64,000 bases of DNA from assembly GCF_000143415.4 (NCBI RefSeq), contig NW_003314262.1:596078-660077 (forward strand). Reading direction: 5' to 3'. Positions 17,679-64,000 of this stretch are shown piece after piece; position 1 is the first letter of the stretch; each line of letters starts with the position of its first letter. The DNA comes from Selaginella moellendorffii. Lineage: Eukaryota; Plantae; Lycopodiophyta. The notes under the pieces were generated by a model. That model searched no databases and was not told the DNA's origin. It saw nothing but the letters and a program-made list of their open reading frames with translations. Position numbers and translations under genes: made by a program.

Positions 17679-19927
17679 ATGGCGGACAATGTCGACGACG
17701 CCGACAAAAGAAAGGAGAAGTTTCTTTGCGTCCAAAGAGCACAGAGCGTGCCTATGGATTTGGGCGCTTTAAATCCTTCCAATCCTCTCAATCCAAGGCG
17801 CTCGGCAGGATCTCGAACTGGATTGAGTGCTCGCATCAAATTCGCAGGAACTCTGGACAAGATCATGGGCAATTCCAAGCCGCCGCAGCGGCAGCACCGA
17901 AGAACTGATCGAGCCCAGCAGCCAGCTCTTGTCCTTGGCCCCGTGATTGGCAAAGTCACACACAACAGCGCCCGGGTTTTGATCGAGGCGAGTCGCGATT
18001 CCTTCGTTACGGCTGTGCTAGAGGCGGTCGAGGAAGACATGGACCCATCGAAGAAATCCTCGTCCCTCCGCAAAGACCATAGCTGGGCCTCGTCAATCCT
18101 GCGCTGGGGAAGCCACAAGATCACGAGGAAAGCGCAGAGCGTCGCGGAGAATGGAGATTTTCTCACGGCAGTCAAGGAGGAGGAGGATCAAATCCAAGAG
18201 GGCTCGTCGATTACCCAGCTGGAGAAGGAGTTTCGAGCTGGAAGGCCGGGAGTGTTTCACTTTACGAATCTCAAGCCTGGCACGAGATACAAGGTGGAAT
18301 TCAAGGGCTGCCTCTATTCCATCCCGGGAAGTTTCAAGACTTTGAGCACTCCGGGATCTACGAACTATAACGTCAACTTTGGCGTCATCAGCTGCAACAA
18401 TGTCTATATCACACAGAAGGCGATTCCAATCCACTCGGATTTGTGGTCGCATCTCTACAGGAGTGTGAGCGCTGGAAAGATTGACTATCTCATCCATCTT
18501 GGTGATCAAGTAAGCTCTCTTCGCTCTGATTTTTCTTTCTAGAAAAAAAAAAATCTCTTTATCCTGTCCTTTAAAGTTTTCATCGATTTTTCATGCACAA
18601 TCTAGATCTATGCCGATGTGGAGCCAGAAGTTGGCGGACCAGAGCTCGACCGTTTCCAAGTCTCCAAGACAATTCTCGCGGACGTTCCTCCACTCCACCG
18701 CGAGAAAAAGAGAGAAGAGATTTGTGAGCTCTACCGCGAGGCATACCGAGAAACTTGGAGCCATCCACCAACGGCGAAGTGCCTGGCAAATTGTCCAAAC
18801 CTCATGATTCTCGACGATCACGAGATCCGGGATAACTGGGGAGACCTTCCCGAGGATTGGGACGAGAGCAGCGTCGAGTTTTTCATAGCTCGCTGTGGAT
18901 GGATCGTTTATCTCGAGTACCAGCGACAGCTTCACGAGGATGTAGATTTCTCGAGCCTGGAAAGCATTGACAAGGTAACTCCACCTCGATTGATTCATGG
19001 ATAGAAGAGCACTTATGATGTTTTCGTCGATCTAGGAGTATCACTTTCATGTCCTTGGAGGAATCGGACTTATGTTTGTGGATATCAGAGGCTCACGAAC
19101 TTTCCACCGCGAGAGGGATGACGAGAACGCCTACCTTGGAACCAAACAATGGAAGGATATCTCCGACTCTCTCTCGTCTCCGGGAGGAATTTTCAATGGA
19201 GTCTCTGCACTGCTCTTGTGTGCCACTGCTCCACTCGTCTTCCTCGAGCCCGTGATCACCAACGTCGCGGCCAAGAGAGTGAATCGTCTCGAGGATTTCA
19301 AAGGCCACTGGTCGGCCCAGCCTCACACCGAAGAACAGATTCGAATGATCGACGCGCTCGCGAGCTGGAAGGCTGCCCAAGATGGTCGTCAAGTTCTCGT
19401 CCTTGGAGGTACCTTTCCTTCCTGTGAATTGCTCGAGCTCAAACTGTGGATCCAATCCAACTAGGTGATGTTCACTGTGGAGGCCACTCGGAAGTTCTCA
19501 AGGACAACGAGATCGTCTTCCAGCAGCTGACTTCGAGCGCCATAGCCAACACTCCTCTCCCCAAGACGGCCTATTACTTCATGAGACTGGTCGGACGCTT
19601 GGGAGGCTCGCTGAGAACCGGCTACACTTTCAAGCACTATCACTGGACGAGATCACGAAACTATGGTCTCGTGCGGGTGAAGATACTTAAAGTTGACCAG
19701 GTAAGCAATGCAGCACCAAGTTCTTCTCACCATCGCTCTCGACTTTTTGGCAGAGAAAACCAAGTTTTGCCGAGATCACCTCGCAGCTCGTCAAGGGAAA
19801 GTTCATGAGAGGAATCCTGTTGGGAGCAAAAGTCAGCAGCACGAGGATAACAGAGAAGAAAAAGAAAAAGAAAAAGAACAGACCTTTCAACTGTTGTGTG
19901 TCATCGGCTCACAGTACTGCTGCCTGA
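17679..19927 (+). CDS. PhoD-like (alkaline phosphatase D family) metallophosphatase, 5 exons
   Basis: Spliced motifs GVISCN, HLGDQ|IYAD, ILDDHEIRDNWG, DIRGSR, LGG|DVHCG, QLTSSAI, preceded by an FN3-like LKPGTRYKV segment. Last exon ends KKKKKKKNRPFNCCVSSAHSTAA* (TGA 19925-19927). Confidence 0.85.
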
Positions 19928-20039
19928 GTCAAAAAGAAATCAGACACACGACAAAGAGTTGCACGAGACCACGAAAGCTCATCACTTTGGACCACTTGTC
20001 ACTAAATAGTACAAAGATTTCTCAGTGCTTACGCTTGTT

Positions 20040-20460
20040 TTTAGAAATTAGTGCTTCTTTCATCATCGATTTACGTCCATGGATCGTTCCTGGAGATTCT
20101 TCTGTTTGTAAACATCCCGTTATGATCTTCGAATCCACACTGCACATTTACATAAAAAAGGAAAGAATTTTAAAAAAATCCATGCAGCTTACCCCAACAA
20201 ATCGCATTGTGTGCCACCAGAGAGTATCCGGCTTGGAAGGTTTTGAATCGTGATACTTGCTGGCCAGACTTTGTAGTCACTGTGTTTTCCATCTCCTCGT
20301 CCCCAAGAGTTTCACCCCGTTTCCACCTCCACTTCAGTCGAAGGATCCGTCTCCGTCCGCTGGGTCTTGCTACGTACGCTTCACGACGGCACTGCCCGTT
20401 ATGACCGTCTTTTGCGGATTACAATCCGGTGGAAATTGTCGGTAAAGAGTCGTCGGTGAG
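20040..20460 (-). pseudogene. Deleted remnant of the 3' part of the EMB1703-like gene (paralogous to 25921-26985)
   Basis: Collinear blocks such as gccaccagagagtatccg...ggaaggttttgaatcg...ctggccagactttgtagt and gtcttttgcggattacaatccgg, separated by deletions. Confidence 0.85.
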
Positions 20461-20499
20461 AAGCTCAACCGAATAAAGACATGGATGATGGTTTGCAGA

Positions 20500-21835
20500 T
20501 TTTGTTTTCTAATGTTTACTGCCTACATGCATCTCCAGTCTGGTCGTGATCAGCTCGGAAGGCCTTCCTGCCTGTAAGCTAGGTCTTCTGGACATTCGAC
20601 AGAGACAGTGCAAACTTAGAAGAGGCTTGCTTCTAGGAATTGGACGGCGTGAAGGTCCTGCAGCCCCGTACTGGATTCCCACGGCTTGAAAAAATCCGAT
20701 CCCACAGCTTACCAGAATGGTTCTTCGCGTCATTGAGAGATCTGGAATTAAGGTTTTTGGATGATACCCCCATCTCGAGAGATCTCCACATCGTGGAACA
20801 GGATCAACGCTCACGCCTGGGAGAATCAATCCAGCGCCATCGATTGCATCAGGTCCATAAAACTTTTTGGAGGTGCTTCCCATTGGGACGTCCCCATGTC
20901 CTTGGACCACCCTCCATTAAGGTAGACCCAGCTTAGTGAGTTTGAGCAATGCATCCACAAGGAAAGACTTGACGTCACAGTATCCCAAGTCAAGATATGA
21001 CAGATTGGTCAGCTTTCCTAATGAACCAGAGATGCTTTGGAGCCAATTTGAAGACAAATACAAAGTCCCTAAATTCTTGAGCTCCAATGCAACCTAGACA
21101 GAAAACCTGCAAGCATTTGAAAGGAGAGAGGCTTGGCAGTGTAGCATTTTCATCCAGGAGCAGGCAAGTGGTGCTGGAAACTTTGACCCTGTTCTTCTTA
21201 GGATGAGGCACCCCCACCAATTAAATCTTGATGTAGTTGCTCGTGAAGGTGTCCCCGCATCTTGATCTTAAATAACACTTTAGGCCCTCTTGCTCCAAGA
21301 TTAGCCAACAACGCATCGTGAATCTTGTACCTCCTCTTCCCCAGCAAAAGGCATAATCTTCTTCTTCGGTAATAAGTGCGTGATTCTTGAGCCTTTACAG
21401 AACATTCATGCTGTGTTGGCCCCATTAGTCAGCAAAGAAAAAGAAAGTGCTGGATGACAAGAGGTAAATGCATTGTAACCCCAGTTTGATCCGCTGGAAT
21501 ACCTGTTTTTCTCATCTTGTCTCCCTGTCTTCTGCCAATACCTTCAAGAGGCCTCCACATTTATCCACAACTGCCTTGATTATTTGATTTTGAGCATATT
21601 TTTTATTTGATAATGGGTGGACTGAACAATTTCAAGCTGTCTTTCCCATCTTCATTTTAATTGCACCTCTACTGTTGAGCACATCAAGTATTCTGGTGGT
21701 GACAAAGATTTTGCTTCCAACCTCTTGCACCACATCAAACAGATCCAAAAGTTCCAGACATTCCTCAGTGTTTTGTTGCCGATCTGACCTTCTATTTTGA
21801 TTTATTTGTAAAGTTAGCATTTGCATGAAGCTGTA
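20500..21835 (-). pseudogene. NB-ARC-LRR (NLR) pseudogene
   Basis: Frame-broken fragments GSKIFVTTR (RNBS-B), AVVDKCGGLLKV (GLPL-like), YKIHDAL (MHD-like) and LRR segments; homologous to 34944-36975. Confidence 0.8.
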
Positions 21836-21892
21836 AACAGAAATGTACCTGCCATGACTGACCGAATGTTAGCCATCGAAATGTGCCTTGAC

Positions 21893-24800
21893 TGTTAGAG
21901 CCACGTGGCGTACAGCCATCGCATTCCTTCAGTTTAGGGCTTTTTTAGTTCTTTCTCATCCTGTGTGAGATCCATCCCAGGGGATTTTTCTGGGAGTGTT
22001 CTCACTGTGAGGCCTGGCTTCTCTCATCATGGTATTAGAGCAATAGGTTAAAATGTTTTTGGCACAACCAGTGCCATAAGTGCCATAGACTCTAGGACAG
22101 GATGGCGTTGTCTTCTTCCTCTAGAGACATATAAAGCAGTTCGATGGGACGAATTTCCTTGCTTGGAAAGAACGTGTACAGTTCTGGTTTATGAGTTGGG
22201 GACTTTGGCCTATGATATCTAGATCGAGAAAATGCCCGTCTAAGGATGATGATGACACAGATCCATACAACAAGTGGAAAGATCTGGATGCTAGGGCAAA
22301 TGGAGCGTTAGGTGGAGGACTCGGCCCTCTCTACAGTGTCTACGTGAATGTGGAGAAGAGTTCTACTGAGAATTGGAAGTCAATTTGTGAAATTATGGGA
22401 GTGGACTTGCAAGAAGATGTGGACGTGATTCTTCGTTGCAGTGAGCTATACAGCCTAGAGCAGCAGCCACATGAGTGTGTGCAAGATTACATCACCAGGC
22501 TTCAGCACAAAGTGGTGGAGATTCGACTACTAGATCCAGAAGCTGCTGTGACAGATCAAGAGTTTAATGCAGTTCTGTTTAAGGGGCTTGCAACTTGTGC
22601 TATGAAGTTTCATCTTCATTATATCAAGAAGATTCCCGACATTACACAGCAGCAGATTTTTGCTGAGCTCATCCAGTATGAGAAAACCGTTATAGGTGAA
22701 GGCAATGCTGCTGAGCAGGATGGGATTGCCAAGCAAGCACAAGCAGGGTGCTCCTCTATCTTTAATCGACTTGGAAATAAGCACTCCAACAGCACCGAGG
22801 AAAAGCCAGCTACCAAGCAAGAATTCAATTTGAAGTGTGGGATGTGTTCAAAGCGTGGGCACTTGAGCAGGGATTGTCCAGTGAAGAAGCATCATTGTGA
22901 GACAAAATTGAAAGCTGAGCATGGATCTTCCTCTGGTGCAACACCACATTTTAAAAGTTGATGCTGAGATGATGGTGACGATGAAGACTCTTCCGCTATG
23001 GCCAATGGCTTGTCATGGATGACTCAAGGAGTAGAGATGGATGTGTTCTTTGGTTGGATTTGGCAGCAACGAATCACTCAACTTTTGACTGTGAGCTATT
23101 TTTGGAGATGAGGAAATGCACCGGCCACAGATAACAGCTTGTTACCAGTTGAAGGTGTGGGCATGATTGAAGTGCGTCTACCCACAGGCTTGGTGGTTCC
23201 AGTCAAGCACATGTGGTACATCCTGAAGGCTAAACATTCCTTGGTGTCCCTCGGACAAATGATGGAGCAAGGATTCAACTTGGAGTTTTGTGGTGATTGT
23301 GTTAAGATCACACATCCAGAGGTTGGACATGTGGCTTCAGCAAGCAAGATAGGACGACTGTTCCGGATGGATTGCGAGGTTTGTGTTCCAGGGAAGCTGC
23401 TAGCTATGATGACAGTGGCTACTGCGAGTTCATCTTCAGGGGGAGCTGCAGATATTCAAACTTGGCATCGTCAGACGATCCAGCAGTTGCAGCAAGACCA
23501 CGTGGTTGATGGCTTGGCCATCACATCTTTTTCAATGCCATTATGCGAGCCATGCATCATGGGAAAGCAGCATCATGGGGCGTTCAACTCTGGTGGGAGT
23601 GTTCGGGAGTGACACTCCCCCTGACACAAGTGTTCACCAACTGGGACACAAGTTCGGCTTGTGGTATCCACCTCTACTCCTCAAGTCATCCATGACAAGC
23701 CATTGGCCGCAGCAGAAGAGTCTTCCTCATCACCATCATCTCGGCGTCGACTTTTAAAATGTGGTGCTGCATCTATGGAAGATCCACACTCAGCTTTCAA
23801 TTTTGTCTCATGATGATGCTTCTTCACTGGACAATCCCTGCTCAGGTGCCCACGCTTTGAACACGTCCCACACTTCAAATTGAATTCTTGCTTGGTGGCT
23901 GGCTTTTCCTCGGTGCTGTTGGAGTGCTTATTTCCAAGTCGATTAAAGACAGAAGAGCACCCTGCTTGTGCTTGCTTGGCAATCCCATCCTACTCAGCAG
24001 CATTGCCTTCATTTATAACGGTTTTCTCATGCTGGATGAGCTCAATTGCAAGCCCCTTAAACAGAACTGAATTAAACTCTTGATCTATCACAGCAGCTTC
24101 TGGATCCAGCAGTTGAATCTCCACCACTTTGTGCTGAAGCCTAGTGATGTAATCTTGCATGTACTCGTGTGGCTGCTACTCTAGGCTGTATAACTCACTG
24201 CGACGAAGAATCATGTCCACATCTTCTTGCAAGTCCACTCCCATAATTTCACAAATTGACTTCTCAATTCTCCACATTCACGTAGACACTGTAGAGAGGG
24301 CTGAGTCCTCTGCGTAATGCTCCATTTGCCCTAGCATCCAGATCTTTCCAATGGACCTATGTCATCATATGGACATTTTCTCAATCTAGATACCACAGGC
24401 TAGAGTCCCCACCTTATATACCAAAACTGTGCACATTCTTTCCAAGCAAAGAAATTCGCCCCATTGAACTGCTCCATGTCTCTGGAGGAAGAAGACGACG
24501 CCATCCTGTCCTAGAGTCTATGGCACTGGTAGTGCCAAAAAAAATTCTAGATATTGCTCTAATCTCAGATAATCAATCAGTGATTGCTCTTTTAGAGAAT
24601 CCACGATATCACGCCAGGAAGGACAAAGCATATACAAATAAAATACCACACAAGTAACATTTAAGTATGTGGCAATTGAGGACCAAGTTGCTAATATATT
24701 TACTAAGGCTCTTCCACCTATTGTTTTCTGGAAACATCAAGAAGCGACTTGTCCTCACAGGGCTCCAGCTAGGTGGGCGGCAGTGGTCACGCTGGTGATA

Positions 24801-24965
24801 AAGATCCAGGTGTACCATTGAGGGGGAGTGTTAGAGCCTGAGTCGCATTCCTTCAGTTTAGGGCTTTCTTAGTTTTCTTTCTCATCCTGTGTGAGATCCA
24901 TCCCTTCTGGGAGTGTTCTCACTCTCTATAGAGCAGTAGGCCGTGAGGCCTGGCTTCTCTCATCA
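21893..24965 (+). mobile_element. Ty1/copia LTR retrotransposon derivative with internal inverted gag duplication
   Basis: 137-bp TG...CA LTRs at 21893-22029 and 24829-24965, TSD TTGAC, PBS tggtattagagc (22030), PPT gagggggag (24820). gag ORF with CGMCSKRGHLSRDC, protease/GAG-pre-integrase (CEPCIMGKQH), and RNase H tail DNQSVIALLENP / DQVANIFTKAL at 24568-24720. Confidence 0.93.
23612..24567 (-). repeat. Inverted copy of the copia PBS-gag region, ending in a PPT
   Basis: Reverse complement of ~22030-23042 with substitutions and small deletions (ORF 23681-23878 KCGTCSKRGHLSRDC). acactccccct at 23612-23622 is an inverted PPT+TGT. Confidence 0.9.
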
Positions 24966-24974
24966 TTGACTTGG

Positions 24975-25800
24975 TACTCGTTTGGCCAAGAGTGTTTTTC
25001 CAGCTCCTACTCCGTGGACTCCAATCTACTTGCTGCTTACGGGGGGCCTCAGCAAGTCTGATACAACCCGCTCCATGTTCGTAGATGCTCAAGAACTTTC
25101 CACCGCGAACCTTGGAACCGAACAGTGGAAGGACAATGGAACGCATGGTCGTCAAGTTCTTGTCCTAGAACCTTTCAAACTGTGGTACCGGCCTTCCAGC
25201 AGCTAACCAGCCAACACTTGTCATCCAAAGACGGTCTGTTACTTCATGAGGCTCTCATTGAACCAGCTACACTTCCAAGTGGACGAGACCACGGCATTAT
25301 TAATGCTTATACTTGAAAGTCGACCAGGCAAGCAAAGCAGCACCAAGTTCTTCCCATCATCTCCTCTCGATGTTGTGGCAGGAAAGCCAAGTTTTGCCAA
25401 TATCACCTCACAGTTCATCAAGGGAAAATTCATGCCTGTTGGGAGCCAAAGTCAGTAGTGTGCAGCACGCCCTTAATATTCTCCTGGTTAGGAAGGATGA
25501 CACTTCGTTCCACGTCCAATTCCCCCTATCCAACACCAACACTCTTAAGTCCACCAGACGTGACCTCCACAAGCACCCCAATTTCGCCTCCAACTTCCAG
25601 CATGTAAGACTTGTAAATCCCAGCTTCTTGCATACAACAACACTTGGCAGCGTTAATTGCTGCCATATTGTTGATCTCTAGCAGCACTAGCGCACTGTGC
25701 TGCCAGCAGTTGCCAGAGGCAATAGCACAGCAGCATGAGGATAGACAAAGAAAAAGAGAAAGAGCCAACCATTGAATTGTCACAGTACTGCTGCCTGAGT
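24975..25800 (+). pseudogene. Deleted remnant of the PhoD-like gene 3' half
   Basis: Collinear fragments of 19070-19927 (gaactttccaccgcga, tggtcgtcaagttct, tcaagggaaaattcatg, cacagtactgctgcctgag) with many deletions and a ~270-bp insertion at ~25460-25730. Confidence 0.85.
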
Positions 25801-25920
25801 CAAAATAGAAAATCAGACACACAAGAAAGAGTTACACGAGCTCACGAAAGCTCATTATTTTACATTGACCACTTGTCACTAAATAGTACAAAGATCTCTC
25901 AGTAAAAGCTTACATTTGTT

Positions 25921-28505
25921 TTAAAAATCGTCGCTCCAAAGGTCTTTCATCATCGACTTTACGTCAATGGATCGTTCCCGGAGCTTCTCCTGCACGTAAA
26001 CATCCCTCCCAATCTCGAGAATTCTATACTCTACCTCTTCAAGCGGTTTTCCTGCGTAGTTTTCAACATGGCCCTTCTTGAGCACTGTCACCTGGAATCC
26101 AGACTCGCTTGCTTCGCGAAGGAGTTCCTGTACAAGCCATAAAAGCAAATAAATCGAATCGTTCGAACAAAGAAAAGCAAAGAATTCCTTACCTTTGGTT
26201 CGAATGGAATCACTCGAGCACCAGTGGCTCCTCCAAGCTTGTTGATCTCAGGTACAAGAGTGCGGCAAAAGTTGAGTGCCTCGTTATGATCTTCGAATCC
26301 AACCACATGTAGCTTCTCTCTGGAATCGCCTTCCAACGCCATGTTCATAGAATAGAGACCAGGAGAAACTTTCTGCTCCTCATTCTGCAGCAGTATACAC
26401 TGCAAGGGAGAGTATCAGAAACCAAAGGAATAAAAAAATAATCATGCAACTTACCGCAACATATCTCAACTGATGCCACCAGAGAGTATCCGCCTTGGAA
26501 GGTTTTGAATCGCGGTACTTGCTGGCCAGACTTTGTAGTGACTGCGTTTTATACTTCTCTTGCATCTTCTCAAAGCGTTTCATCTCCTCGTCGCCAAGAG
26601 TTTCACCCTGCTTCCTCGCCTCTTCTTTCAGCTCCGCGTGCCAGCGACGTAAGAGCTCACGCTGCCCGTCAGGTCCCTGGAAAAAGAGTCTCAGCGTTTC
26701 TTCCACCTCCTCTTCGGTTAACCATTCGTCCAAGTCCTTTCCAATCTCCTTCAGAAGCTTTCGCACTTTAGGATCCGTCTCCGTGTCATATCTCCGTTGT
26801 ATCTCTTTCGGCCACACTTTCTTCTTGTTACTCTGCTGCTTCGTTTTCTTCAGGTCTGGTTGATCGGTGCTCACTGGCTTACGCTTCACGGCGCCACTAC
26901 TGCTGCCCGTTACGACTGTCTTTTGCGGATTACAATCCGGTTGCCACTCAGCTTTCTTTCTCCCGGGAATCGTCGGTAAAGAATCGTCAGTCTCTTGCTC
27001 CTGAGATTTTTTCTGTTTTTTTTGTGCATCGGAAGCTGTAAAGGACAAGAGGTAAACGTTAGAACACGAAATTCTAGCAAAACATCCGACTTACAAATGC
27101 GCTCCATTATCCAGGCCTTGATCGGTTCAGCTTCGCTCCCCAGCTCCGTTTCCAGTCCATTGAAAAGAATATCTTTCGAGTCAGGAGGCATGCCATGGAA
27201 CAAAGGTTTTCCTCTTCGCTCGTTCTCCTGGGCCTTGAGCAGAATGCACCGCAGCACTTCGTCCTTCTTCCAGATATGTTGTGTAGCAGCAACTTCAGCG
27301 CTCGAAAGATTTTCATTGCTGGCTCTTGTTGGTGGAGTATGTGAGCTCGGCGCACGCTGTGGCGAGGACGAAGTCTGAGAGAGTGACGATGTAGGTGGCG
27401 AGTTTTCCTTCGCGTGCTTATCGGACCGAAGAACTTCGCAAGCTTGTTCATACGTCGTGATAAACCTCGTTCTCTTAGCACTAGCCTCTTGCTTCTCTTC
27501 AGTCCTCCCACTAAGCTCTTTTCCAGTCTCCTGGCCCTTTATCACCACACCATCGCTGCCTGGAAATTCTGCGTGCTTATCAGAACGAAGAACTTCGCGA
27601 GCTTCTTCATACGTCGTGATAAACCTTGTGCTTTCACCACCAGCCCGTTGATTCGTTTCATGTCGCCCACTTAGCTCGTTTCCAGTCCCGTGACCATTGA
27701 TCACCGCTCCATCACTGTCACTCGACCCTGGCTGAGAAGCGTCTGATTCTCGAATGAGCTCGAGTTGCCGAGAAAGATCCATGAAATCTGGCTTCGGCGT
27801 GTTCCTGTCGAGTTCGTCTCCATTCTGCTTCCTCAAAAGCTGTACCCGAGCAGCGGCCGGAAGACGAAGAGGTGGAGGTAAACTCTCTTCAGCGGCAGCA
27901 TCATCACCAATACTCTCATCCATCGTTGCCTGCCTTGCCATGTCTCGAATCTTCGCGATTCTTTCTTCCTCTTCCTCGCTCATCGCAGGAGTAGCAACCG
28001 CTTCTACGTGTAGTAGCTCCTCGTCAAAGTCCAGTTTTTCCATCGTTGTCCCCTGGAAAGCTCGAGCTGGCGCTGGGACTTCCACTCCTCTCTCCCTCTT
28101 CGCCAAGGAAGAGATGATAGTCGAGACAGCCATCGCCAAGCCAGCCACAAACCCGCCGAGAAGAAAAGGCCGAGCTTGCTGGAGTCCAAAACTCCTCGCT
28201 GCTGGAAGCGTCGAGCTCAGCTCCACCTTCGCAAAATTCCACCTTGACAGCATCACTTCCTTGCTGGAATCCATCTCCCTGGCCTTGAAAATCCTCTCCA
28301 ATGCCACGCTCTTGAAAGAAATCGCTGGGAAACCACACCTGGCCTTGGCGGGCGCGTCGCCCACGCCCCATTCTCTGGCAAAACCATCTTTCAATCCCCT
28401 GATTCGTGCTGCCCTGGTGCCGGATCTTCGACGATTGCCGCTGCTGCTGGGGATTGGAAGCGCTGGGCGGTAGAAGGAGCTCCCCAGCAGCAGCCCATTC
28501 GCCAT
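25921..28505 (-). CDS. EMB1703-like plastid protein, 4 exons
   Basis: Transit-like N-terminus and a TM segment. C-terminal LWWHQLRYVA, GLYSMNM, VVGFED and PLEEVEYRILEIG...ERSIDVKSMMK resemble the EMBRYO DEFECTIVE 1703 C-terminus as recalled. Confidence 0.72.
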
Positions 28506-28733
28506 AAACCCTAAACCCCCGCCACCCACATTGCTCCTCTTCTACAAAAAATGTACGTTTGCTCCTTCCACCATAGCTAGAATTTCGCGTCTCTTTCTTT
28601 CCTCTCCATCGTCTCCCTCGACGGACGAGGAGAAGATAAACCCCTCTTTCGTCTCTCTCTCCATCGATGACAAGAACTTTTCTTCTTCATCGCCTTCGTC
28701 TTCCTTGATGTAGAGAATCCCCGTATCGTCTCG

Positions 28734-34943: not shown

Positions 34944-36975
34944 TTATGGATACAGAAGAGAGGCGGCATGAGCAAAATACAGAGCTTGCAGTTATGTCCA
35001 ATCTCGGTGCGCTTGTCTCTGCAGTTGTCAACGAGGTGATTGGGCTTGCCCAAGTCTGCTCTTCATTGCAGCCTCATGTTAAACACCATCTTGTTTCAAT
35101 CTCTCTGCACTTATGATGATGATGGTAATGATATGATAATGTTTAGATGGCATTTATATTTTTGTATCATGTAAGAACACGCATTTCCAAACCCAAAACA
35201 TGGTCAAGTTCAGGGTCAGTAGTGTAGTAGTGGAGCAGGTGTGTGGGGGCCTTCCACTGGTCTTAAAGGTAATTGGCAGAAGAATGGCAGGCACACAAGA
35301 TTGAGACTATGCTCAAAGCGAACCCAGCGATTAACAACTCTTGATGAGGAACAACAGGTACTGCAGCGACTCAAAATGGGGTACGATGCATTGTTACCTC
35401 TTGGCATCCAGCAGCACTCTCTCTTCTTTGCTGCGTATGCAGAAGACTGGCGAATTGGATTTTGGGATCTATTCAAATGTCGGAAAAACACAGCAGAGGA
35501 GGTGAGGCTCAAGAATCACGCACTTATCACTGAAGAAAATTATTCTTATTCAGGTGCACGGTGTAAGAAGTACAGGATTCATGATGCAGGCCCCAAGTGT
35601 TATTTCAAGGCTGGGTGGTGGCAGAGAGATGCGGGGACGCCTTAATGAGTAATTACAGCAAGATTTCTCTGTTCTTATGTAGCATTTCTAAAGACATCTT
35701 TCTACAGAAGAACAGGATCAGAGTCTCCAACACCACTTGCCCCTGGATCAAAATCCCGCTCTCACTGCATTGCCAAGCCTCTCTCTTTTCAAAAGCTTGA
35801 AGGTACTTTGCCTTAAATTCACTGACCACATAGCATTCAAGAATTTAGAGACCCTGGATTTGTCCTGGGATGAATCACTCGAAAGCATTCCAGGTTCACT
35901 CGGAAAGATGACCAAATCTGGACTTGACAGGTTGTCACAAGCTAGAGCATTTCCCTGTCGATGCATTGCTCAAACTCACCAAGCTGGGATACCTTAATGG
36001 GCTGAACAATTCAGCAATGCTACGCTGCTGCATCATCAACTTTTCAAACATAAGAAATGCTTAAACCGGAAGCTTGAACAAGCATCTCGATGGGATGTTT
36101 CAGGCCTTCACAAAGTTGGAGGTGTTGATTATTGAGACAACGCTGGCCGTGGAGCTACCTGCAAGTATAAGCAAACTCTCACATTTGAAGAAGTGGAAAT
36201 TAACTGGTTACTAACACGGTCTTCAACGGTTGACCAACCTTAAAAGATTGACACTGTGGGACGGGACTGGAGCAGATTTCTGAGGTTATGGAAGTGGGAG
36301 GGTTTGGGGAAAGTGAGTTTAAGGTCACCTCCTGCATGGAGAATTTGGAAAATTTGCTTATAGGTACGTATCACCTTGAGGAGCTTCCTTCTTTAACAGA
36401 AGAAACGTTTCCCATGGTGACAAGGCCTCTCCCTTTGGAATTGCCCAAACTTGATTCGGCTGCCAACCACGGCGGTCCTCAACATCGGTAGCTGTCACTC
36501 CTTGAAGGACCTCTCCACCTCGTTCTTTCCAAAGCTAGAGAAAGTTTCTCTTATCTTACTGCAACGGAGTAACGATATTGGAGTGCCCATCACTGAGAAG
36601 TGTTATCTGGATCGCAGGTTCCTACGACTTGAAAAACTATCGCTTGAGGAATATCAACATCTTCCAGATGTCTCTCTAGATCTAGCTGCCATGCATGCGT
36701 TCCCTGCGAATAAGGATGTTGGGCAGCTACCAGAATGGATGGAAACATAGACAACGTTGAGAGATCTGAAATTATAATTTGGATGTGATACGATGGTGTT
36801 GCAAAGCTTCCTTTGCTAAGGAGGCTTGATCTGACAGGTTGCAAGAAGATCAGCATATTACTATCTGCACATTCCAAGGATAGCTCCTTCTGTCCTCAAA
36901 CTTGACTGGCATATCCGTATTTGAAGAGCACCTCTCGCAACGCCTTCAAAAAGTTCTATGGAGTGAAAGAGATAT
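34944..36975 (+). pseudogene. NB-ARC-LRR (NLR) pseudogene, inverted paralog of 20500-21835
   Basis: gggccttccactggtcttaaaggtaattggc (GLPLVLKVIG), KYRIHDA, LETLDLSWDESLESIPGSLG LRRs; multiple stops and frameshifts; shares aggctcaagaatcacgcacttat with the minus-strand copy. Confidence 0.8.
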
Positions 36976-43709: not shown

Positions 43710-45229
43710 TCAATTCGACGAGGGGAAGATGCAAGATCCATAGCCTGTCAGTCAATCCAAATCGTAAGCTCGAAACTCCAAAAACGAGCAAAGAAACTCC
43801 AAAAGCTTACTTGGATTGATCTTCGTTAGAGCCGCCGTGCTCGAGAAAGAGCACTGATTCTCTCGGATCCAGCGACGATTAAAAGCGTAGGAGGCGTGCG
43901 CGATGATCGTGTTGGGATAGAAGCACGACTGCCCGTCCTGGATCGCAGCGCAGTCACTGGGATTCTGGCTGCAAATCCTGTCCAACTCTCTCTGGAGAGA
44001 GCTCGTATCAGCATCCGGCCTGGCGACGCACCACGAAGAAGAAGACGAGGAAGAATTCACGACCGCAACCGACATGGGCTCTGGCACCGCCTCGTACTGC
44101 GAATCCGAGAGCCTGCCCGTGAGATCGATGCTGTAAACCGGCCGCCCATCCGGGTAGAGCAGCCCCCAATGCCGCTCGGTGCCAGGCCCGGGCTTGAGAT
44201 TCTCGTTGTAGAGTGCGAAGATGAAAGTCGCTATGGCGCTGTTAGGCCTCTTTGGTGTCCCTCTCCCCTCGATCACCTTCCTCACTAGCCGGCGATTGTA
44301 GGTCGCGGCGTTCGATCGCGTAGCGCCCCTCTCGTTCTCATCGCCGGCATTCGGCCACCCCGTCTCGCTGATTCCGAGCTCCACATCGTCAAACCCTAGA
44401 TCCTCCATCGCCGAGAAGGTCGCGTCCGTCATGGCGTCGAGCAGATTCGTGTACCTGAGCTTGCCATCGGGAACGACCGTGGCGGCGGGATCGAAGAGCG
44501 CGTAGCCCAGGGAGATGTTGACCGGATTGCCCGCCCACGCGAAATAGGGGTAGAGATTGATGTAGAATGGCGCCCGCGTTGTCCGCAAGAACCCTAACAA
44601 GGGCTTGAGCACGGTGTCGCGGATGTCCGGGCGAAATCTCCCCACGGATGGGGGGTAGGACGCCGCCAGCACGTCCCCCGCGACCGAGGTAGTGATCTTG
44701 ATGCGATCGTCGAGGTTGTGGCTCTGGAGCGCGCGGTGGAGGTTCTCGATCGCGGGCATGAGCTGCTGCCACGTCTGGGCGAGGGCTGGATAGGAGAAGA
44801 TCTCGTTGCCGACGACGATGACGATGATCTGGGTGCTGGGGTAGTAGGGCAGGACGCTCTGGGCAATCCAGTCGTCGGCGCTGGATTGGGAGGAGGCCAC
44901 GGCGCCGATGATCTCGTTGGGCACCATGATCGTGACGCGAATGGAGCTGTTGGAGAGGGCAGTGAGGACTTGGGGATTGGCATCGAAGAGCTTGACGAGG
45001 CGGACGTTCATGGATTTGAGAAGCGCCACCGTCTGGTTTGGGGAGGGGATGTTGTCCGAGATTCGGCCATAGTTCACACCGATTTGATCAAGCCCACTCC
45101 CGGGAGTGCTGCTGCCTGGGAAAGAAGAAGAAATCAATCGCGTTCTCCCTCGCTCGATCGATCGAATGCTTTACCTGGTGGATTGACGGCGATGCAAATG
45201 TGGAGGAGGACGCACAGAGGAACCACCAT
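43710..45229 (-). CDS. Glucan endo-1,3-beta-glucosidase (GH17) with X8/CBM43 domain, 3 exons
   Basis: Signal exon MVVPLCVLLHIC, IGVNYG, VGNE, INLYPYF, ISETGWP, FALYNENLKPGPGTERHWG, X8 WCVA...HASYAFN; last exon SYGSCIFPSSN*. Confidence 0.93.
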
Positions 45230-47405: not shown

Positions 47406-49594
47406 GATAGAGTAAAACCCTCCACGCCTAAAAACATTTGAATGGCTTGCGTGGAATTTATTTCCCACGCCTCCTGTCGATCCAACGGTCACCGGTGCAT
47501 CCATCCAACGGCGTCGAGAATCAACGCTTATCTTGTATTGAAAAGTCAGTCGAAAATTCGACTGTCTATTTCTACGCGCCTTTTTGTTGTTTGGTTGCAA
47601 TTGTACTTTGAACTTATGGGAACTCTCAACGAAACAACACTTTTACGAATAAACGAACGTTTGGAGAGTCAACCCGCAAATGTTGCCTGCCTTGGAGTCC
47701 TCTTTTGGGTTAGATCTTAAGCGTTCACGTAAACTCCTAGAACCAGTCGTGATAAAATCACGTAATAGTGGGCATTGAACAAGTGGTCGAACCAAGCAAT
47801 GCCCACTTTCACATCCAAAGAGCTGCAAAACAACCAAAGTTTCCAATGAAGAGCTGTGGTTGTCAAAGAAAAAGCTTGCTTACCTTGACATTAGGAGACA
47901 CCCCAATGTCAAACTCTGTGTGAGGATACTTGAAAGATTTTGTGTGACAATTTTATCTCTGACTTGCAAACTTGTAAGGACAAGCCTCACATACTCCCCT
48001 TCAAAAAATAGAGAAGGCTTATTATGAATATTGTCCTCTTTTTTCAGCTTCATGTGTAAAGCTTTAATGGTAATGTGCTTGCTTTGTAAGCAAGAGGTCA
48101 TGAGTTACTGAAAGCATAATATTCTTTCTTTTCCATGGCTTGGAGATGCAGAGCTGACATGGGTGACATAATATGATGTAGTAAGGGCTGATGCTTAAGC
48201 GATATGATGTGGTCCTGTGGACATTGTTCAAACAGTCAAGGGATTAGACTCAATTGAGAAGCTTAAGTTGATGTTCATATGGTACAAACATTTGAAGTAC
48301 ATATATGATGGATTCCATTATATTCATCTTAGCACTTACTAACCCCTTAAAGGACAATCTTTATTATGATGGTTTATTTAGGCTTATGGCAACAAAAACA
48401 ATTGCCTTTCAATGTATCTTCTTTTGTTAGTGTTGCAAATGTAATTATGAGTATCAAATGTTACTTATTAGCAAGTTTTTTGGATATTCTTTTTTTACTG
48501 TCACAACAGTAGAATGTTAGTTTTGCTGGATCCTTTATCCCAAGTTACTTGAGAAATTGGTCATTATATATGTACTTGTGCTAGATAAACATAAGGTAAA
48601 AACTTTCTATGTGTTTTTTGTTGAGTAAACTCAACTTGGTATGAGAAACTCATATGTTAGCTTGAAGTTATTAGTGTTGAAAATCCCTTTTAAATGACTA
48701 ATTTTTCTATTTTACTTTAGTCACTTTTGATCACTTAATGGAGTTTTATTCACAACCTTCATAAATTTTATTCATAACTTGGGGGTTTATTAACTTTGTG
48801 AATGGCCTTTATGCCACTCTACCTTTACACTAGATTCAAATGCTTCACATTTTTTATCCCACTACAAACACCTAAATGTACTACTAGTATATCAGCTTAT
48901 TATGCTAAAGTCATATCTATTCACCTTTGTTTTATTGGTAGTCCAAGATAATTTATGCCACAGTCTTGTTTCCCAAAGACAAGGCCATCTGTTCATTTGT
49001 GGTCATATTATGATTACAGTTTAGCATCATTATGATGCCTGAAGACATAAAGATCCTCAATATCCTTTCTTTAGTCCTCACCAAACCCCTTTCTGTACAT
49101 GTCTATGCTCGCCAAAACTACCATGGGGTCAGGGTTTAAAGCCTGAACCACTAAGTCCCATTGACCACTTGGACTTCCTCACCACATTCTGAGTTTGAAG
49201 GATTGGGGTGGCTATTGCAAGCCATAAATTCAGTTTGCAGCATTTGCCTCTCTAGAGATGGCCTTTAGATTGCTCACTTGAGGCTTCGGCTAGTTCCTAG
49301 GTTGGACAAGTGCTCTAGGTCCTCCACTAGGCTCGAGAGTTTAAGTAAGTAATTCTCTTATGTGTGAGACACAAAATCCCTAAGCCCCAAAGTGGAGCCG
49401 GAAGGGCGCCACATGGTAGTGGCCGAAGCGAGAGCCAAACGAGCGTAACACGTTTGGACCAAAAGCTCCGACTTGAAAAGTCAAGAGCGGGAGTGGAACT
49501 CCCAACGAAGTGCTCGAGGAACGAGCACGAAGCGAGCAAAAGGCGAGGCTCCAAAAAGGGACCCAAAAGGACCAACACATGACACGTGGGAGTG

Positions 49595-50190
49595 TCCGAG
49601 ATGGACTCGAGTTGGAGTCCGAAGTGGAGTCCGAGATGGACCCGAGATGGAGTCCGAGATGGAGTCCGAGGTGGACCCGAGATGGACCCGAAATGGAGTC
49701 CGAGATGGAGTCCGAGATGGACCCGAGATGGAGTCCGAGGTGGACCCGAGATGGACCCGAAATGGAGTCCGAGATGGACCCGAGATGGAGTCCGAGGTGG
49801 ACCCGAGATGGACCCGAGATGGAGTCCGAGATGGAGTCCGAGATGGACCCGAGATGGAGTCCGAGATGGAGTCCGAGATGGAGTCCGAGGTGGACCCGAG
49901 ATGGACCCGAAATGGAGTCCGAGATGGACCCGAGATGGAGTCCGAGATGGAGTCCGAGATGGACCCGAGATGGACCCGAGATGGAGTCCGAGATGGAGTC
50001 CGAGATGGAGTCCGAGATGGAGTCCGAGATGGAGTCCGAGATGGAGTCCGAGGTGGACCCGAGATGGACCCGAGATGGAGTCCGAGATGGAGTCCGAAGT
50101 CGAGACCGAGACCGGGACCGAGACCGGGACCGAGACCGAGACCGAGGCCGAGGCCAAGACCGAGCCCGAGCCCGAGTCCGAGTCCGAGTC
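49595..50190 (+). repeat. Tandem array of mixed 12-bp (GAGATGGAGTCC) and 11-bp (GAGATGGACCC) units grading into CCGAGN hexamers, in the 5' LTR
   Basis: Directly visible; responsible for repetitive ORFs in all six frames. Confidence 0.95.
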
Positions 50191-53100: not shown

Positions 53101-55485
53101 AATCAAGTGGGGGCTCGAGGGTGTTGCCGCTAGCAACCGTGATGCCATGGAGAGTCTAAGTTATGGAATTGTCCATGTTAGACTATGTGGCATTTGGAAG
53201 GCTTGCAAAAGGGAGGCCTTAGCAAGCTGAGGGACAGAGTTCCTTCAAGGTTCCCAAAGACGATTCTAGGTAGCTTAGTACCTAGAAAGGCCAAGTGTAA
53301 ATGGTTCATGGAACGCGCGAAATCAGAGTGGCGCAGCAAAAGCGTGGTCTTGAAGCTTGCCATGAGGCAAGGCTATCAAGGTTAGGGAAGTAGTTCCCGA
53401 GTGTTCAAAGAGAGGGCTTTGAACGAAAGTCGATGGTCAAGGACTTTCACGCTTATGCAGGAACCATGTTACAGTGGTCGGAGAACTTGCCAAGCGAGAT
53501 TGGCACGTCGGGGGAACAAATACCCTAGTTGAAGGCGATAACTTCAAAAAGGGTGGGCCATGGGGCCGAGCATGGAGGAGTCCATGCATGATCACAGACA
53601 TGTCAAGTGAGAGGACTTGGCAGTGTGGAGGAACTAGGTTCCTAAGCTGTGATCTGTAGCGCGCTTTAAAAATAAGTTGGTGCACCGGCGTGGGGAGTCA
53701 CGCCAGGCATCTTGTGTGATGCCATCCGTAGATGCATATACGGAGGTTGGGTTCGAGTCCCGACCCTCTAGTGCTTGGGTTCGAGTCCCAAATCACTAGG
53801 GCGTGGTGATGGTTTGAAATATGAGGACACTCATATTTCGGTGGTCATGGACTCTCAGTGGGGAGACTGGTTTGGGCACACCGCCAAGCGAGGGATGCCT
53901 CGGAGTCGTGATGCACGGTTAGATTGCCTAGTGTGAAAGCTCGGCATATCTAACTTGAACGCTTTGGTGCAAGTGGCACCAAGGTCGTGGTGAGTGAGAT
54001 GGGGACACCTAATCTCAGTTGCTATGAACCCTTGGCCGTAAGGGCTAGCTTGGGTGCACCGCCAAGTGTGGGGGATGCCCCCGGGGTTATAGTCAACAAC
54101 TTGGAGGTCTAGAAAACCAAGTACCTCTTGGCAAATCTGTTAAGGTGCCAAGGTGAGATCACTAGGTGATCTTATGGCCAGATAAGGACAAGGTCCTTGG
54201 TTGGCTAAGGAATGAAGTTCCTGGTTCAAAATGTTGAAATTGAACTGTTTAAGGTGGTGTGGCTTGGTCGTGATAACCAAGTGGGAAGAGCACCTAAGGG
54301 AAATAAACTATGTCCGTGCGATGGCATAGTGAGTCCGAGGAAAGTAGTCTCTATAAAAGACCCATGGGAGGGTCACGAAGTTGGGCCGTGGATAGAGCCC
54401 ATAGTAGAAGATGCTAAAGAGACGTACTAGGGGTGAACATCCTCCGGACTTGGCAAAGAAGAGTCTTTGCTATGGAACCGAAACAATACCTCAAGGAGGG
54501 AGGTAGAGATTCGATGTTGCTTGGTGCAACAATCAACGGATAGGAGCAAAAGATGAGTGGCCAAGATAGGGCCGTGGAATCCCTTGGAAGGAATCCAAGT
54601 GACAAAGTTAGGCGAGGAACACTAATGTGTTGGACGCTAACAAGTTGCGGGAAAGGAAGTGTGTTTCCAAGGAAGGATTCCGAAATGCTCCAATTTGGCG
54701 AAAGTGGAAGCTCCAAGGGAGGGAGCGGTAAGGTAGCCAAATGATAGGGCCATGAACAGCCCTAGCACAAAGTATGATAACTGGAACTTTGGCACGAAAT
54801 AGAAGAGAGGATGATGGTGCCCTCGAGTAGAGAACTTCCTAGGATGGGAAGTGGAGTTGCACAAAAGGTGCAAGGCAAGGTGTCGGAGACACCTAAGAAA
54901 TTGACTCCAAGAAGTCAAAATTCAAAGTTCCAAAGTGCAAAGGTTATATCGATGGAAATTGAGACTACTCGAGAAGGAGTAGTGGGATTGACTTAGAGAA
55001 GGGTCTCTAAGAGGTTTAGCGAGAACTAAACCAATAAAAGGAGAGAACCATTACATGTGGTCCAATCAGTCTCTAAGTTGGAGAGACTACGCTCCTTAAA
55101 GGATGGACAAGGCATGGTGAGCCTTTGATGTCAAACCATAGACAAAGATTGGCTAGGTGCCAAAGATGGAAATGGTGACACGTGTGGGTGTCACTTTATG
55201 AAAGGGTTTACCGTTCGATGAGGACATCGAACTTCGTCTATGGGTGGTGGAGTTGTGAGACACAAAATCCCTAGGCCCCAAAGTGGAGCCGGAAGGGCGC
55301 CACATGGTAGTGGCCGAAGCGAGAGCCAAACGAGCATAACACGTTTGGACCAAAAGCTCCGACTTGAAAAGTCAAGAGCGGGAGTGGAACTCCCAACGAA
55401 GTGCTCGAGGAACGAGCACGAAGCGAGCAAAAGGCGAGGCTCCAAAAAGGGACCCAAAAGGACCAACACATGACACGTGGGAGTG

Positions 55486-56081
55486 TCCGAGATGGACTCG
55501 AGTTGGAGTCCGAAGTGGAGTCCGAGATGGACCCGAGATGGAGTCCGAGATGGAGTCCGAGGTGGACCCGAGATGGACCCGAAATGGAGTCCGAGATGGA
55601 GTCCGAGATGGACCCGAGATGGAGTCCGAGGTGGACCCGAGATGGACCCGAAATGGAGTCCGAGATGGACCCGAGATGGAGTCCGAGGTGGACCCGAGAT
55701 GGACCCGAGATGGAGTCCGAGATGGAGTCCGAGATGGACCCGAGATGGAGTCCGAGATGGAGTCCGAGATGGAGTCCGAGGTGGACCCGAGATGGACCCG
55801 AAATGGAGTCCGAGATGGACCCGAGATGGAGTCCGAGATGGAGTCCGAGATGGACCCGAGATGGACCCGAGATGGAGTCCGAGATGGAGTCCGAGATGGA
55901 GTCCGAGATGGAGTCCGAGATGGAGTCCGAGATGGAGTCCGAGGTGGACCCGAGATGGACCCAAGATGGAGTCCGAGATGGAGTCCGAAGTCGAGACCGA
56001 GACCGGGACCGAGACCGGGACCGAGACCGAGACCGAGGCCGAGGCCAAGACCGAGCCCGAGCCCGAGTCCGAGTCCGAGTC
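55486..56081 (+). repeat. Same tandem array in the 3' LTR
   Basis: Same unit order as 49595-50190, offset 5891 bp. Confidence 0.95.
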
Positions 56082-63400: not shown

Positions 63401-64000
63401 GTGTGGCAATCTTGGCCCCAGACGATAGGTCAAATTCAAAGAGATCAGAATACTCCTTCATAAGCTGGTCAACAGCTACAACACAAAGATCATCGAAGGG
63501 ATCGGAAAAGGGAAGAGCAGAACAAGATGGAAACACAAGAGGAAATAATGGGGGAACAAAAGTAATGGAAGCAGAGGTAAAAGTAGAGGGACGAAGAGGT
63601 ACGGAAGTGAGAGGAATGGATGAAACATAAGGAAGTATGAGACAAGGGAGAAAAGCCTCAAAGTCACACTTGGCATGATTGTGCTGCAACCAATCCATAC
63701 CAAGAATGAGGTCAAAAGATTGACTCGGCACCACCCGCAATGACTGCAACTCAAGCTCGAGATCGCCCACACGCACAACCAGGTCCGCCTCATCTCGTGC
63801 ACATGCATGTGTATGGCCGTTGCCATAAAGAATGAAAACTGGATCTGCCGCACGACGCAAGTGTAGACGACAACGTGTGGCAACAGGTCGAGCAATAGAA
63901 GATAAACTCGAACCTGTATCAACCAACATGGAGAGAAGAATAGGAGACCTCTTGTTATAAAAACGAGCTTGGAAAGTAAACACTGGATGAACCGGTGCCG
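60404..64000 (-). mobile_element. Ty3/gypsy LTR retrotransposon (non-chromoviral), 3' part; pol disrupted
   Basis: PR LVDTGS, RT (KLDLASGYWQ, MPFGL, FIDD), RNase H (DASD, YSTTEKECLA), integrase (HH-CC, DLMGP, LSDNG, GPY). PPT AAGAGGAGGGGA at 60581-60592; 3' LTR ~60404-60580. Frameshift at ~62360, in-frame TGA at 61657. Confidence 0.95.

Follow-up and report, generated by a model that had tools for sequence, protein, structure and literature searches.

Introduction

How a genome first recognizes an active retrotransposon is still debated. The best documented trigger is a natural rearrangement that forms a hairpin, known mainly from the DNA transposon case of Mu killer. In maize, Mu killer is an inverted duplication with proven siRNAs that silences MuDR heritably and in trans, according to the account of Slotkin et al. 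2003/2005 given in PMC11624286. For a Copia retrotransposon, antisense self-nested insertion of EVD has been observed experimentally (PMC11624286), and in tomato, inverted viral integrations supply pools of siRNAs (PMC9868043). Aberrant template switching yields complex LTR elements flanked by a target-site duplication (TSD) (PMC1950507) as well as defective proviruses (PMC12657518), and recombination occurs between co-packaged genomes (PMC6894440).

Here we describe a Ty1/copia insertion of about 3 kb in Selaginella moellendorffii in which the integrase (IN) core, the reverse transcriptase (RT) and most of RNase H (RH) are replaced by an inverted copy of the primer-binding site (PBS), leader and gag. 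It lies within a 64-kb stretch of DNA, analyzed as a whole and referred to below as the window. With an LTR element that was already a hairpin when it integrated, a replication error would lead to a silencer in a single step, and here in a lycophyte, with small-RNA machinery unlike that of flowering plants. We present the locus as a well-defined structural example and as a candidate silencer only.

Results

The element occupies positions 21893-24965 of the window as a single insertion, and has the LTR pair with TG...CA ends and the 5-bp TSD of Ty1/copia elements (Table 1). The PBS and the polypurine tract (PPT) are both where they are expected in this class. The usual Ty1/copia PBS, TGGTATCAGAGC, is complementary to the 3′ end of initiator tRNA-Met; the window contains no tRNA gene with which the PBS could be compared. 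Alignment of the two LTRs gave 1 substitution in 116 aligned bases and 4-6 indels, four of which, as read, measure 12, 2, 9 and 19 bp. A TATA motif occurs once in the two LTRs, at 24927 in the 3′ copy, within the 10-nt palindrome CTCTATAGAG, and the 19-bp block that contains it is missing from the 5′ LTR. The original prediction had described intact LTRs with a TSD; the LTR pair and the 5-bp duplication stand, while the word intact, in view of the 4-6 indels, and the coordinates do not. Its statement that the outer element integrated normally agrees with the matching TTGAC repeats and the LTR pair. One LTR pair and one TSD, the arrangement of a complex element born by reverse transcription, suggest that the rearranged element was itself the integrated unit.

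Table 1. Features of the rearranged Ty1/copia element and the evidence for each (positions are those of the window).
Feature	Position	Strand	Evidence
Left target-site duplication, TTGAC	21888..21892	.	Sequence; same 5-mer at 24966-24970
5′ LTR, 137 bp, TG...CA ends, G-box CACGTG at 21902	21893..22029	+	Alignment, motif scan
PBS, TGGTATTAGAGC, directly 3′ of 5′ LTR	22030..22041	+	Sequence; exact match unique within window
Left arm: PBS, leader, gag	22034..23042	+	Inverted-repeat search, alignment, Pfam
Loop, sense, contiguous with left arm: protease remnant, Pol beta-barrel domain, integrase zinc-finger region	23043..23665	+	
Internal PPT-like motif, GGTGGGAG followed by TGTTC; PPT/U3-junction mimic, putative central PPT	23592..23604	+	Repeats D8/D10, motif count
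Right arm: inverted gag-leader-PBS	23666..24563	-	Inverted-repeat search, alignment, Pfam
Sense tail, RNase H C-terminus-like, one frameshift and stops	24564..24819	+	Translation motifs
PPT, GAGGGGGAG, adjoining 3′ LTR	24820..24828	+	Sequence
3′ LTR, 137 bp, TG...CA ends	24829..24965	+	Alignment, motif scan
Right target-site duplication, TTGAC	24966..24970	.	Sequence

The coding remnants are those of a copia-type gag with a CCHC knuckle, followed by fragments of pol. The left-arm gag starts with an ATG at 22103 and suffers a 2-bp frameshift after its first 10 codons; a 256-aa ORF then runs from 22191 to 22961, where a CGA-to-TGA change has created its stop. Pfam recognized Retrotran_gag_2 in this arm (E 1.3e-5) at 25.1 bits, slightly below the 27-bit cut-off, and zf-CCHC over its cut-off (21.4 bits) on the minus strand in the right arm, the coding frame of which is broken by several frameshifts, stops and a 69-bp deletion. 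In the loop, an ORF at 23139-23612 contains matches to Pol_BBD (E 1e-4) and gag_pre-integrs (E 0.011); the protease active site, read by eye, is D-L-A in place of D-S-G, and the sequence reaches approximately to the first catalytic Asp of integrase. The tail at 24564-24819 we take to be the C-terminus of RNase H, from the motifs DNQS...HAR, TKHI.IKYH and Q.A.IFTKAL; it has no match in Pfam, which lacks a model for this region. The order seen is thus protease (PR) remnant, Pol_BBD and IN zinc-finger region, and then the RNase H-like tail followed by the PPT. Neither a Pfam search nor the translations revealed an RT or an integrase core in the element, and the complete PR-IN-RT-RH order is unreadable because these two parts are missing.

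The space they should fill is taken up by an inverted duplication of part of the transposon, as in Mu killer. Six collinear inverted blocks span 22034-23042 and 23666-24563, with 623 nt between their inner ends. Gapped alignment of the arms gave 820 matches and 77 mismatches (91.4% identity, K2P 0.093) and about 8-13 indel events, three of which measure 69, 15 and 9 bp while several are shorter. Repeat search, alignment and Pfam thus confirm the original proposal that an inverted, diverged PBS-gag copy replaces the IN core and RT; the arms it had delimited were correctly placed as an inverted repeat, with ends that we correct to those given above and a loop of 623 bp. The right arm stops 4 nt before the LTR side of the PBS, and a PBS copy with 2 mismatches can be read at 24556-24567. 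The inner end of the inverted segment (junction A) falls 66 nt downstream of the GGTGGGAG/TGTT motif, and the outer end (junction B) lies within the PBS, 4 nt off the LTR boundary. The window holds 5 copies of the 9-mer GGGAGTGTT (0.44 expected), of which the element contains 4, all on the plus strand.

Substitutions were about ten times more frequent between the arms than between the LTRs (77/897 vs. 1/116, Fisher P=0.0012). After correction for CG, CHG and CHH context, 7.8 LTR differences were expected vs. the 1 observed (P=0.0035). Transversions (0/116 vs. 13/897, respectively, in LTRs and arms) are by themselves insufficient to separate the ages of the two pairs. The ten-fold difference would mean that, at the time the LTR pair arose, the gag copies already differed or were older, and a pre-existing difference is as expected for two co-packaged templates. 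Indels were more frequent per base in the LTRs (4-6) than in the arms (P=0.003), which a simple 'young insertion' model leaves unexplained.

Divergence between the arms was highest at CG sites (45%), lower at CHG (20%) and lowest at CHH (8%), with a dN/dS of 0.63 and differences of 25/15/18 by codon position. Judged by this pattern, the arms have diverged neutrally, by decay of the methyl-cytosine type, and the element has the character of a methylated relic under neutral decay. On the dN/dS value and the lack of a third-position excess, we rejected purifying selection between the two copies, as from two functional parents; hypermutation of one arm or strand-biased editing was rejected on the counts of the four transition classes (18/17/15/14). 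Wobble-compatible and disruptive transitions numbered 31 and 33, respectively, a lack of bias on which selection for stem pairing was also rejected. The 256-aa left-arm ORF was considered for a restriction role like that of the truncated Gag p22 of Ty1, and showed no signs of constraint.

Since a backwards gag copy has replaced the enzyme genes, any transcript across the element would fold back on itself. The sense transcript had a predicted minimum free energy (MFE) of -1833 kcal/mol, vs. about -836 kcal/mol for shuffled sequences, and the antisense strand one of -1808 kcal/mol. The predicted fold contains the long intramolecular stem of an hpRNA locus, with 842 arm-arm pairs, a longest uninterrupted helix of 161 bp and 12 helices of at least 21 bp; the arms still have 18% of their 21-mers in common. 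RNA of either polarity is thus predicted to form a stem of about 0.9 kb with 91% identity and a 623-nt loop, which makes it a plausible substrate for Dicer. The earlier expectation that a transcript would fold into long dsRNA therefore holds at the level of prediction.

BLASTN with the element found no further copy in the 64-kb window, the matches being the element itself and its own arms. A search of 1.84 billion protein representatives gave one relative of its gag, a decayed S. moellendorffii fragment of 276 aa that matches over 72 aa at 71-72% identity, and no intact family member; annotations in such collections often omit transposon genes. An inverted paralogue of the left flank lies at 35343-36000; homology ends there before the insertion point, and an empty paralogous site was not found. 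No known RNA family or miRNA precursor was detected in 21000-26000, a single sub-threshold mir-29 match being attributed to chance. A link to a neighboring LARD-like element was rejected, as the two have no PBS or LTR in common, and the 539-aa ORF beside the element gave no homologue. A GH17 gene is also among the neighbors in the window, and its 100% match identifies the host as S. moellendorffii.

Discussion

We consider it probable that the element is a non-autonomous, decaying Ty1/copia derivative, and that its inversion arose by template switching before integration. This reading is favored because both ends of the inverted segment can be read as natural ends of reverse-transcription intermediates. 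The correspondence is suggestive, and for junction A it involves a putative central PPT that was noticed post hoc. We propose that the growing DNA strand would have halted at a natural stop in the integrase region, about 66 nt beyond the internal PPT-like motif, and then continued on a sense-strand template that it entered where gag ends. This template would probably have been a second, diverged, co-packaged RNA, its 5′ end trimmed to the PBS, and would have been copied backwards up to its end there. A second jump, to the RNase H region, would have allowed completion through the PPT and LTR, to give LTR-PBS-gag-PR-IN' / inverted gag-PBS / RH'-PPT-LTR.

Plants commonly acquire nested insertions that later suffer deletions, and assembly of the structure after integration is a rival, if rather unlikely, account. 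A family copy diverged by about 9% would have inserted in reverse into the resident pol, and two deletions would then have removed the nested LTRs and pol and the resident IN core-RT. Such a history could give an identical map. Arms that differ by 9% within outer LTRs that differ by about 1% in substitutions are what two family members would produce, the locus is rich in indels (4-6 in the LTRs, 8-13 in the arms), and the antisense EVD insertion provides an experimental precedent (PMC11624286). However, one deletion endpoint would have to fall no more than 4 nt from the nested LTR/PBS boundary and the other 66 nt after the resident PPT-like motif, both of them apparent reverse-transcription landmarks. 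Moreover, repeat search and BLASTN revealed no trace of inner LTRs or an inner TSD within the 64-kb window, and the insertion and both deletions would all need to have occurred while the outer LTRs acquired a single substitution.

A sub-case of pre-integration origin, which we regard as unlikely, is that the hairpin is older than this insertion: a mobile, non-autonomous inverted-gag family whose arms diverged within the lineage. The neutral divergence of the arms, at ten-fold the LTR value, would follow naturally, and the element retains its LTRs, PBS and PPT, which are required in cis. On the other hand, genomic RNA with a 0.9-kb stem should be harder to package and reverse-transcribe and should draw Dicer, no second copy exists in the 64-kb window, and the gag has a single distant, decayed relative among predicted proteins. 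As the original prediction anticipated, an assembly artefact is barely credible, and so is chance similarity: 77 substitutions and several private indels separate the arms, their similarity is far beyond chance, both junctions lie in unique sequence, and the TSD and LTRs enclose the structure coherently.

A silencer similar to Mu killer is plausible in form. Such a locus would give a transcript, from the LTR or by read-through, that is diced into siRNAs to silence the Copia family in trans; that this element acts, or acted, in this way appears quite unlikely to us. The long predicted dsRNA, with helices of up to 161 bp, is consistent with it, and the 21-mers still common to arms diverged by 9% mean that related copies would be targeted. 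In S. moellendorffii, a 24-nt siRNA peak, CHH methylation and phased secondary siRNAs are all missing (PMC5569507), and primary hairpin siRNAs could therefore matter more there; the tomato integrations show that inverted viral copies can supply siRNA pools (PMC9868043). The arms also show heavy CG- and CHG-type decay, but a CG > CHG > CHH gradient is typical of any silenced transposon. Against the idea, the arms decay neutrally with no bias towards preserved pairing, the 5′ LTR lacks its TATA block, and an intact family member to be silenced was not found in the protein collections. A killer function would be compatible with every origin considered above.

A broader version is very unlikely: that Copia reverse transcription in Selaginella recurrently yields fold-back daughters anchored at the PBS, which integrate already formed as LTR-bounded hairpin genes; that these 'born-silencer' insertions are a main RDR-independent source of siRNAs against transposons in a plant that lacks the 24-nt peak, CHH methylation and secondary phased siRNAs; and that this locus shut down its own family.

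In the Selaginella element, as in Mu killer, the 5′ part of a transposon has been partly duplicated in inverse orientation by a natural event, and a transcript would give a long hairpin with homology to the first gene. Mu killer, in the account available in PMC11624286, arose from a DNA transposon through rearrangement of the chromosome and uses a flanking promoter, whereas the present element is an LTR retrotransposon with the inversion inside one LTR pair and TSD, and is a candidate silencer. The inverted-repeat integrations of a tomato endogenous pararetrovirus are likewise rearranged inverted copies of a reverse-transcribing element (PMC9868043). They are non-LTR and viral, and belong to a locus type that feeds 21-22-nt siRNAs, with both transcripts and siRNAs measured (PMC9868043), whereas the hairpin of the Selaginella element is a prediction. 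In the antisense self-nested EVD of Arabidopsis rdr6 lines, a Copia element also carries its own sequence in reverse and was proposed as a hairpin trigger of silencing (PMC11624286). That insertion is complete, with its own LTRs and LTR hairpins (PMC11624286), while the Selaginella element inverts PBS-gag only, has no inner LTRs and has its junctions at putative reverse-transcription landmarks. Finally, elements and proviruses generated by template switching are, like this one, rearranged daughters that integrated once, with a single TSD (Sabot and Schulman 2007, PMC1950507; PMC12657518). Those described are direct-orientation fusions, such as three-LTR elements, or deletions (PMC1950507, PMC12657518), and are without strand inversion. 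The Selaginella element carries an inversion, which would require that synthesis move to a template of the opposite polarity, and, as read from its structure, its inverted form is thus different from the cases described.

Structure of the rearranged Copia element

The LTR pair, the TTGAC common to both flanks and the placement of the primer-binding site (PBS) and polypurine tract (PPT) show that one LTR-retrotransposon insertion accounts for the full 3073 bp. The original prediction of intact LTRs with a target-site duplication (TSD) thus stands for the LTR pair and the 5-bp TSD, but not for the word intact, since the LTRs show one substitution over 116 aligned bases and also differ by 4-6 indels, four by one reading (12, 2, 9 and 19 bp). 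Indels are more frequent per base in the LTRs than in the arms of the inverted repeat (P=0.003), and each large LTR indel touches a short palindrome. Two palindromes, the G-box CCACGTGG and ATCCC-AG-GGGAT, are confined to the 5′ LTR, and a third, CTCTATAGAG, which contains the LTR's sole TATA motif, to the 3′ LTR. A motif scan found no TATA motif in the 5′ LTR, and the G-box was not found in the 3′ LTR.

Features of the Copia element and occurrences of its recurrent 9-mer (window positions)
Feature	Position	Strand	Description
TSD TTGAC	21888-21892 and 24966-24970		same 5-mer on both flanks
5′ LTR, 137 bp	21893-22029	+	sequence reading and end alignment; starts TGTTAG, ends CATCA
PBS TGGTATTAGAGC	22030-22041		directly after 5′ LTR
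Left arm	22034-23042	+	PBS, 60-nt leader, gag (ATG at 22103)
Loop	23043-23665	sense	continues left arm
Right arm	23666-24563	-	inverted PBS-leader-gag; CCHC knuckle still recognisable
Tail	24564-24819	sense	C-terminus of Copia RNase H by motif
PPT GAGGGGGAG	24820-24828		directly before 3′ LTR
3′ LTR, 137 bp	24829-24965	+	sequence reading and end alignment; starts TGTTAG, ends CATCA
9-mer GGGAGTGTT, in element	21992, 23595, 24824, 24909	+	one per LTR, one at PPT/U3 junction, one in integrase region
9-mer GGGAGTGTT, outside element	18248

A repeat search of 19000-28000 paired the two arms by six collinear inverted blocks, their inner ends lying 623 nt apart. When the left arm was aligned, with gaps, to the reverse-complemented right arm, 820 positions matched and 77 did not (91.4% identity, K2P 0.093), which confirmed the inverted, diverged PBS-gag arms. 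The 8-13 indel events between them, a number that varies with gap penalties, include gaps of 69 and 15 bp and several shorter ones; a 9-bp tandem duplication is private to the left arm. The similarity of the arms is far beyond chance and their difference is beyond assembly collapse, in agreement with the earlier view that an assembly artefact is unlikely.

Left-arm gag has a 2-bp frameshift about ten codons after its ATG. A 256-aa ORF (22191-22961) matches Pfam Retrotran_gag_2 (E 1.3e-5) and terminates at a TGA, the corresponding codon in the right arm being CGA. The loop contains, in order, a protease remnant with the active site D-L-A, Pol_BBD (E 1e-4) and a GAG-pre-integrase/zinc-finger region (E 0.011), and breaks off near the first catalytic Asp of integrase. 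Several frameshifts and stops, together with the 69-bp deletion, disrupt right-arm gag. The tail had no match in Pfam, which has no model for that region; its motifs DNQS.., ..HAR/TKHI.IKYH.. and Q.A.IFTKAL are presumably those of the Copia RNase H C-terminus. Integrase core and RT are absent, as is most of RNase H, and their place between loop and tail is taken by the minus-strand PBS-leader-gag.

A predicted long hairpin RNA

Folded as RNA, 22030-24828 has an MFE of -1833 kcal/mol, compared to about -836 for shuffles, and 842 of the 1151 predicted pairs are arm-to-arm. Twelve uninterrupted helices reach at least 21 bp, the longest 161 bp. The antisense strand folds nearly as well (-1808). 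The physical premise of the dsRNA idea, that a transcript would fold into long dsRNA, therefore holds as a prediction for either transcript direction. Exact 21-mers common to both arms amount to 18%, with a longest exact match of 52 bp.

Origin of the inversion

The outer end of the inverted segment (24563/24564) falls within the PBS, 4 nt from the expected LTR start. The inner end (23665/23666) is 66 nt downstream of GGTGGGAG|TGTTC (23592-23604), which resembles the element's PPT/U3 junction, GAGGGGGAG|TGTTAG. The 9-mer GGGAGTGTT occurs five times in the window (0.44 expected), four of them within the 3-kb element and all four on the plus strand. The second PPT of Ty1 lies in the integrase region, with a short displacement 'flap' past it. 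The existence of this second Ty1 PPT is documented (PMC7969010). Both ends of the inverted segment would thus coincide with natural ends of replication intermediates. The outer one would match genomic RNA whose R-U5 has been removed by RNase H, leaving a 5′ end equivalent to the minus-strand DNA 3′ end, and the inner one would match the point where the upstream plus-strand segment stops at its 3′ end.

Substitutions are far denser in the arms than in the LTRs (77/897 vs. 1/116, Fisher P=0.0012), and only 1 LTR difference was seen vs. 7.8 expected from arm rates at CG, CHG, CHH and A/T sites (P=0.0035), indicating that the two gag copies were already non-identical when the LTR pair was made. 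The excess is carried by transitions (64 vs. 1), transversions alone not separating arms from LTRs (13/897 vs. 0/116), and unequal mutation rates could explain some of this contrast if methylation was confined to the arms.

We consider it probable that the inversion was made in the particle, by template switching between two co-packaged templates that had diverged; such an origin accords with existing knowledge of recombination and aberrant strand transfer (PMC6894440, PMC1950507, PMC12657518). A single TSD encloses the whole element, and neither a repeat search of the element nor BLASTN within the 64-kb window found a trace of inner LTRs. The main rival, a nested insertion in reverse orientation trimmed by two deletions, would explain the diverged arms just as well and fits an indel-rich locus, but leaves both breakpoint positions as coincidences, and we regard it as unlikely. 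Less probable still is a variant where the hairpin element is itself a mobile family.

Decay of the arms and relatives of gag

Arm differences are neutral for coding (dN/dS 0.63; codon positions 25/15/18) and transition classes are symmetric between the two arms (C>T 18, T>C 17, A>G 15, G>A 14). No bias towards changes that keep G:U pairs was found for either transcript polarity (31 keeping vs. 33 not). With transitions assigned to the C/G state, 45% of CG, 20% of CHG and 8% of CHH sites are changed (6.5% for CHH counting transitions only). Such a gradient is typical of decay in CG/CHG-methylated transposons, and its low CHH component accords with the absence of CHH methylation reported for S. 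moellendorffii (PMC5569507).

Among 5.8 billion clustered proteins (1.84 billion representatives), the one close relative of gag is an S. moellendorffii fragment of 276 aa (71-72% identity over 72 residues); all other matches are short and at most about 48% identical. No intact family member was visible in these collections, where transposon genes often go unannotated, and Rfam gave no RNA family in the element region. The neutrality, symmetry, pairing, methylation-type decay, LTR and relative data neither disprove nor support siRNA production, past or present. The element is most likely a fold-back Copia born of reverse transcription and now a decaying relic.

Neighbourhood of the element

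Same-orientation copies of a host segment (19544-20430 and 25209-26941; 76-91% identity in blocks) flank the insertion; they partly duplicate the 3′ portion of minus-strand ORFs at 26380-28529. One such ORF (26910-28529, 539 aa) has no Pfam domain, no homologue in a word search, and a 147-nt direct repeat (27412-27558 and 27571-27717, 80% identity). Just upstream of the element are LRR-like ORF fragments (20917-21087, minus strand), probably pieces of resistance-gene-like or receptor-like pseudogenes, which have an inverted paralogue at a distance of about 14 kb (35343-36000, 70-85% identity). Farther away lie an intact single-exon GH17+X8 beta-1,3-glucanase gene (43755-45137, minus strand), 100% identical to SELMODRAFT_437767 of S. 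moellendorffii, which identifies the host species, and a LARD-like LTR element unrelated to the Copia element, with a PBS-like TGGTATCGGAGC at 51201 and two 99% identical long repeats (49363-50171 and 55254-56062, 5891 bp apart) that carry arrays of 12-bp tandem units. Ty3/gypsy-type ORFs (60610-63983, minus strand; aspartic protease, RVT_1, RNase H, and rve integrase with a Tf2-like SH3) reach the window end.

Comparison with known hairpin triggers

The proposal of a Mu killer-like silencer acting on its own family is partly supported: structure and folding hold, and silencer function stays a candidate role. Primary hairpin siRNAs arise independently of RNA-dependent RNA polymerase. In S. moellendorffii, an obvious 24-nt small-RNA peak and phased secondary siRNAs are lacking and adult tissue shows no CHH methylation (PMC5569507; PMC7111516), and primary hairpin siRNAs could therefore be of greater weight there. 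Our literature search found no account of an internal inverted PBS-gag within an element bounded by LTRs and flanked by a TSD. A hairpin trigger of silencing is established for Mu killer. One has been proposed for the self-nested EVD Copia (PMC11624286) and measured for inverted pararetroviral integrations (PMC9868043).
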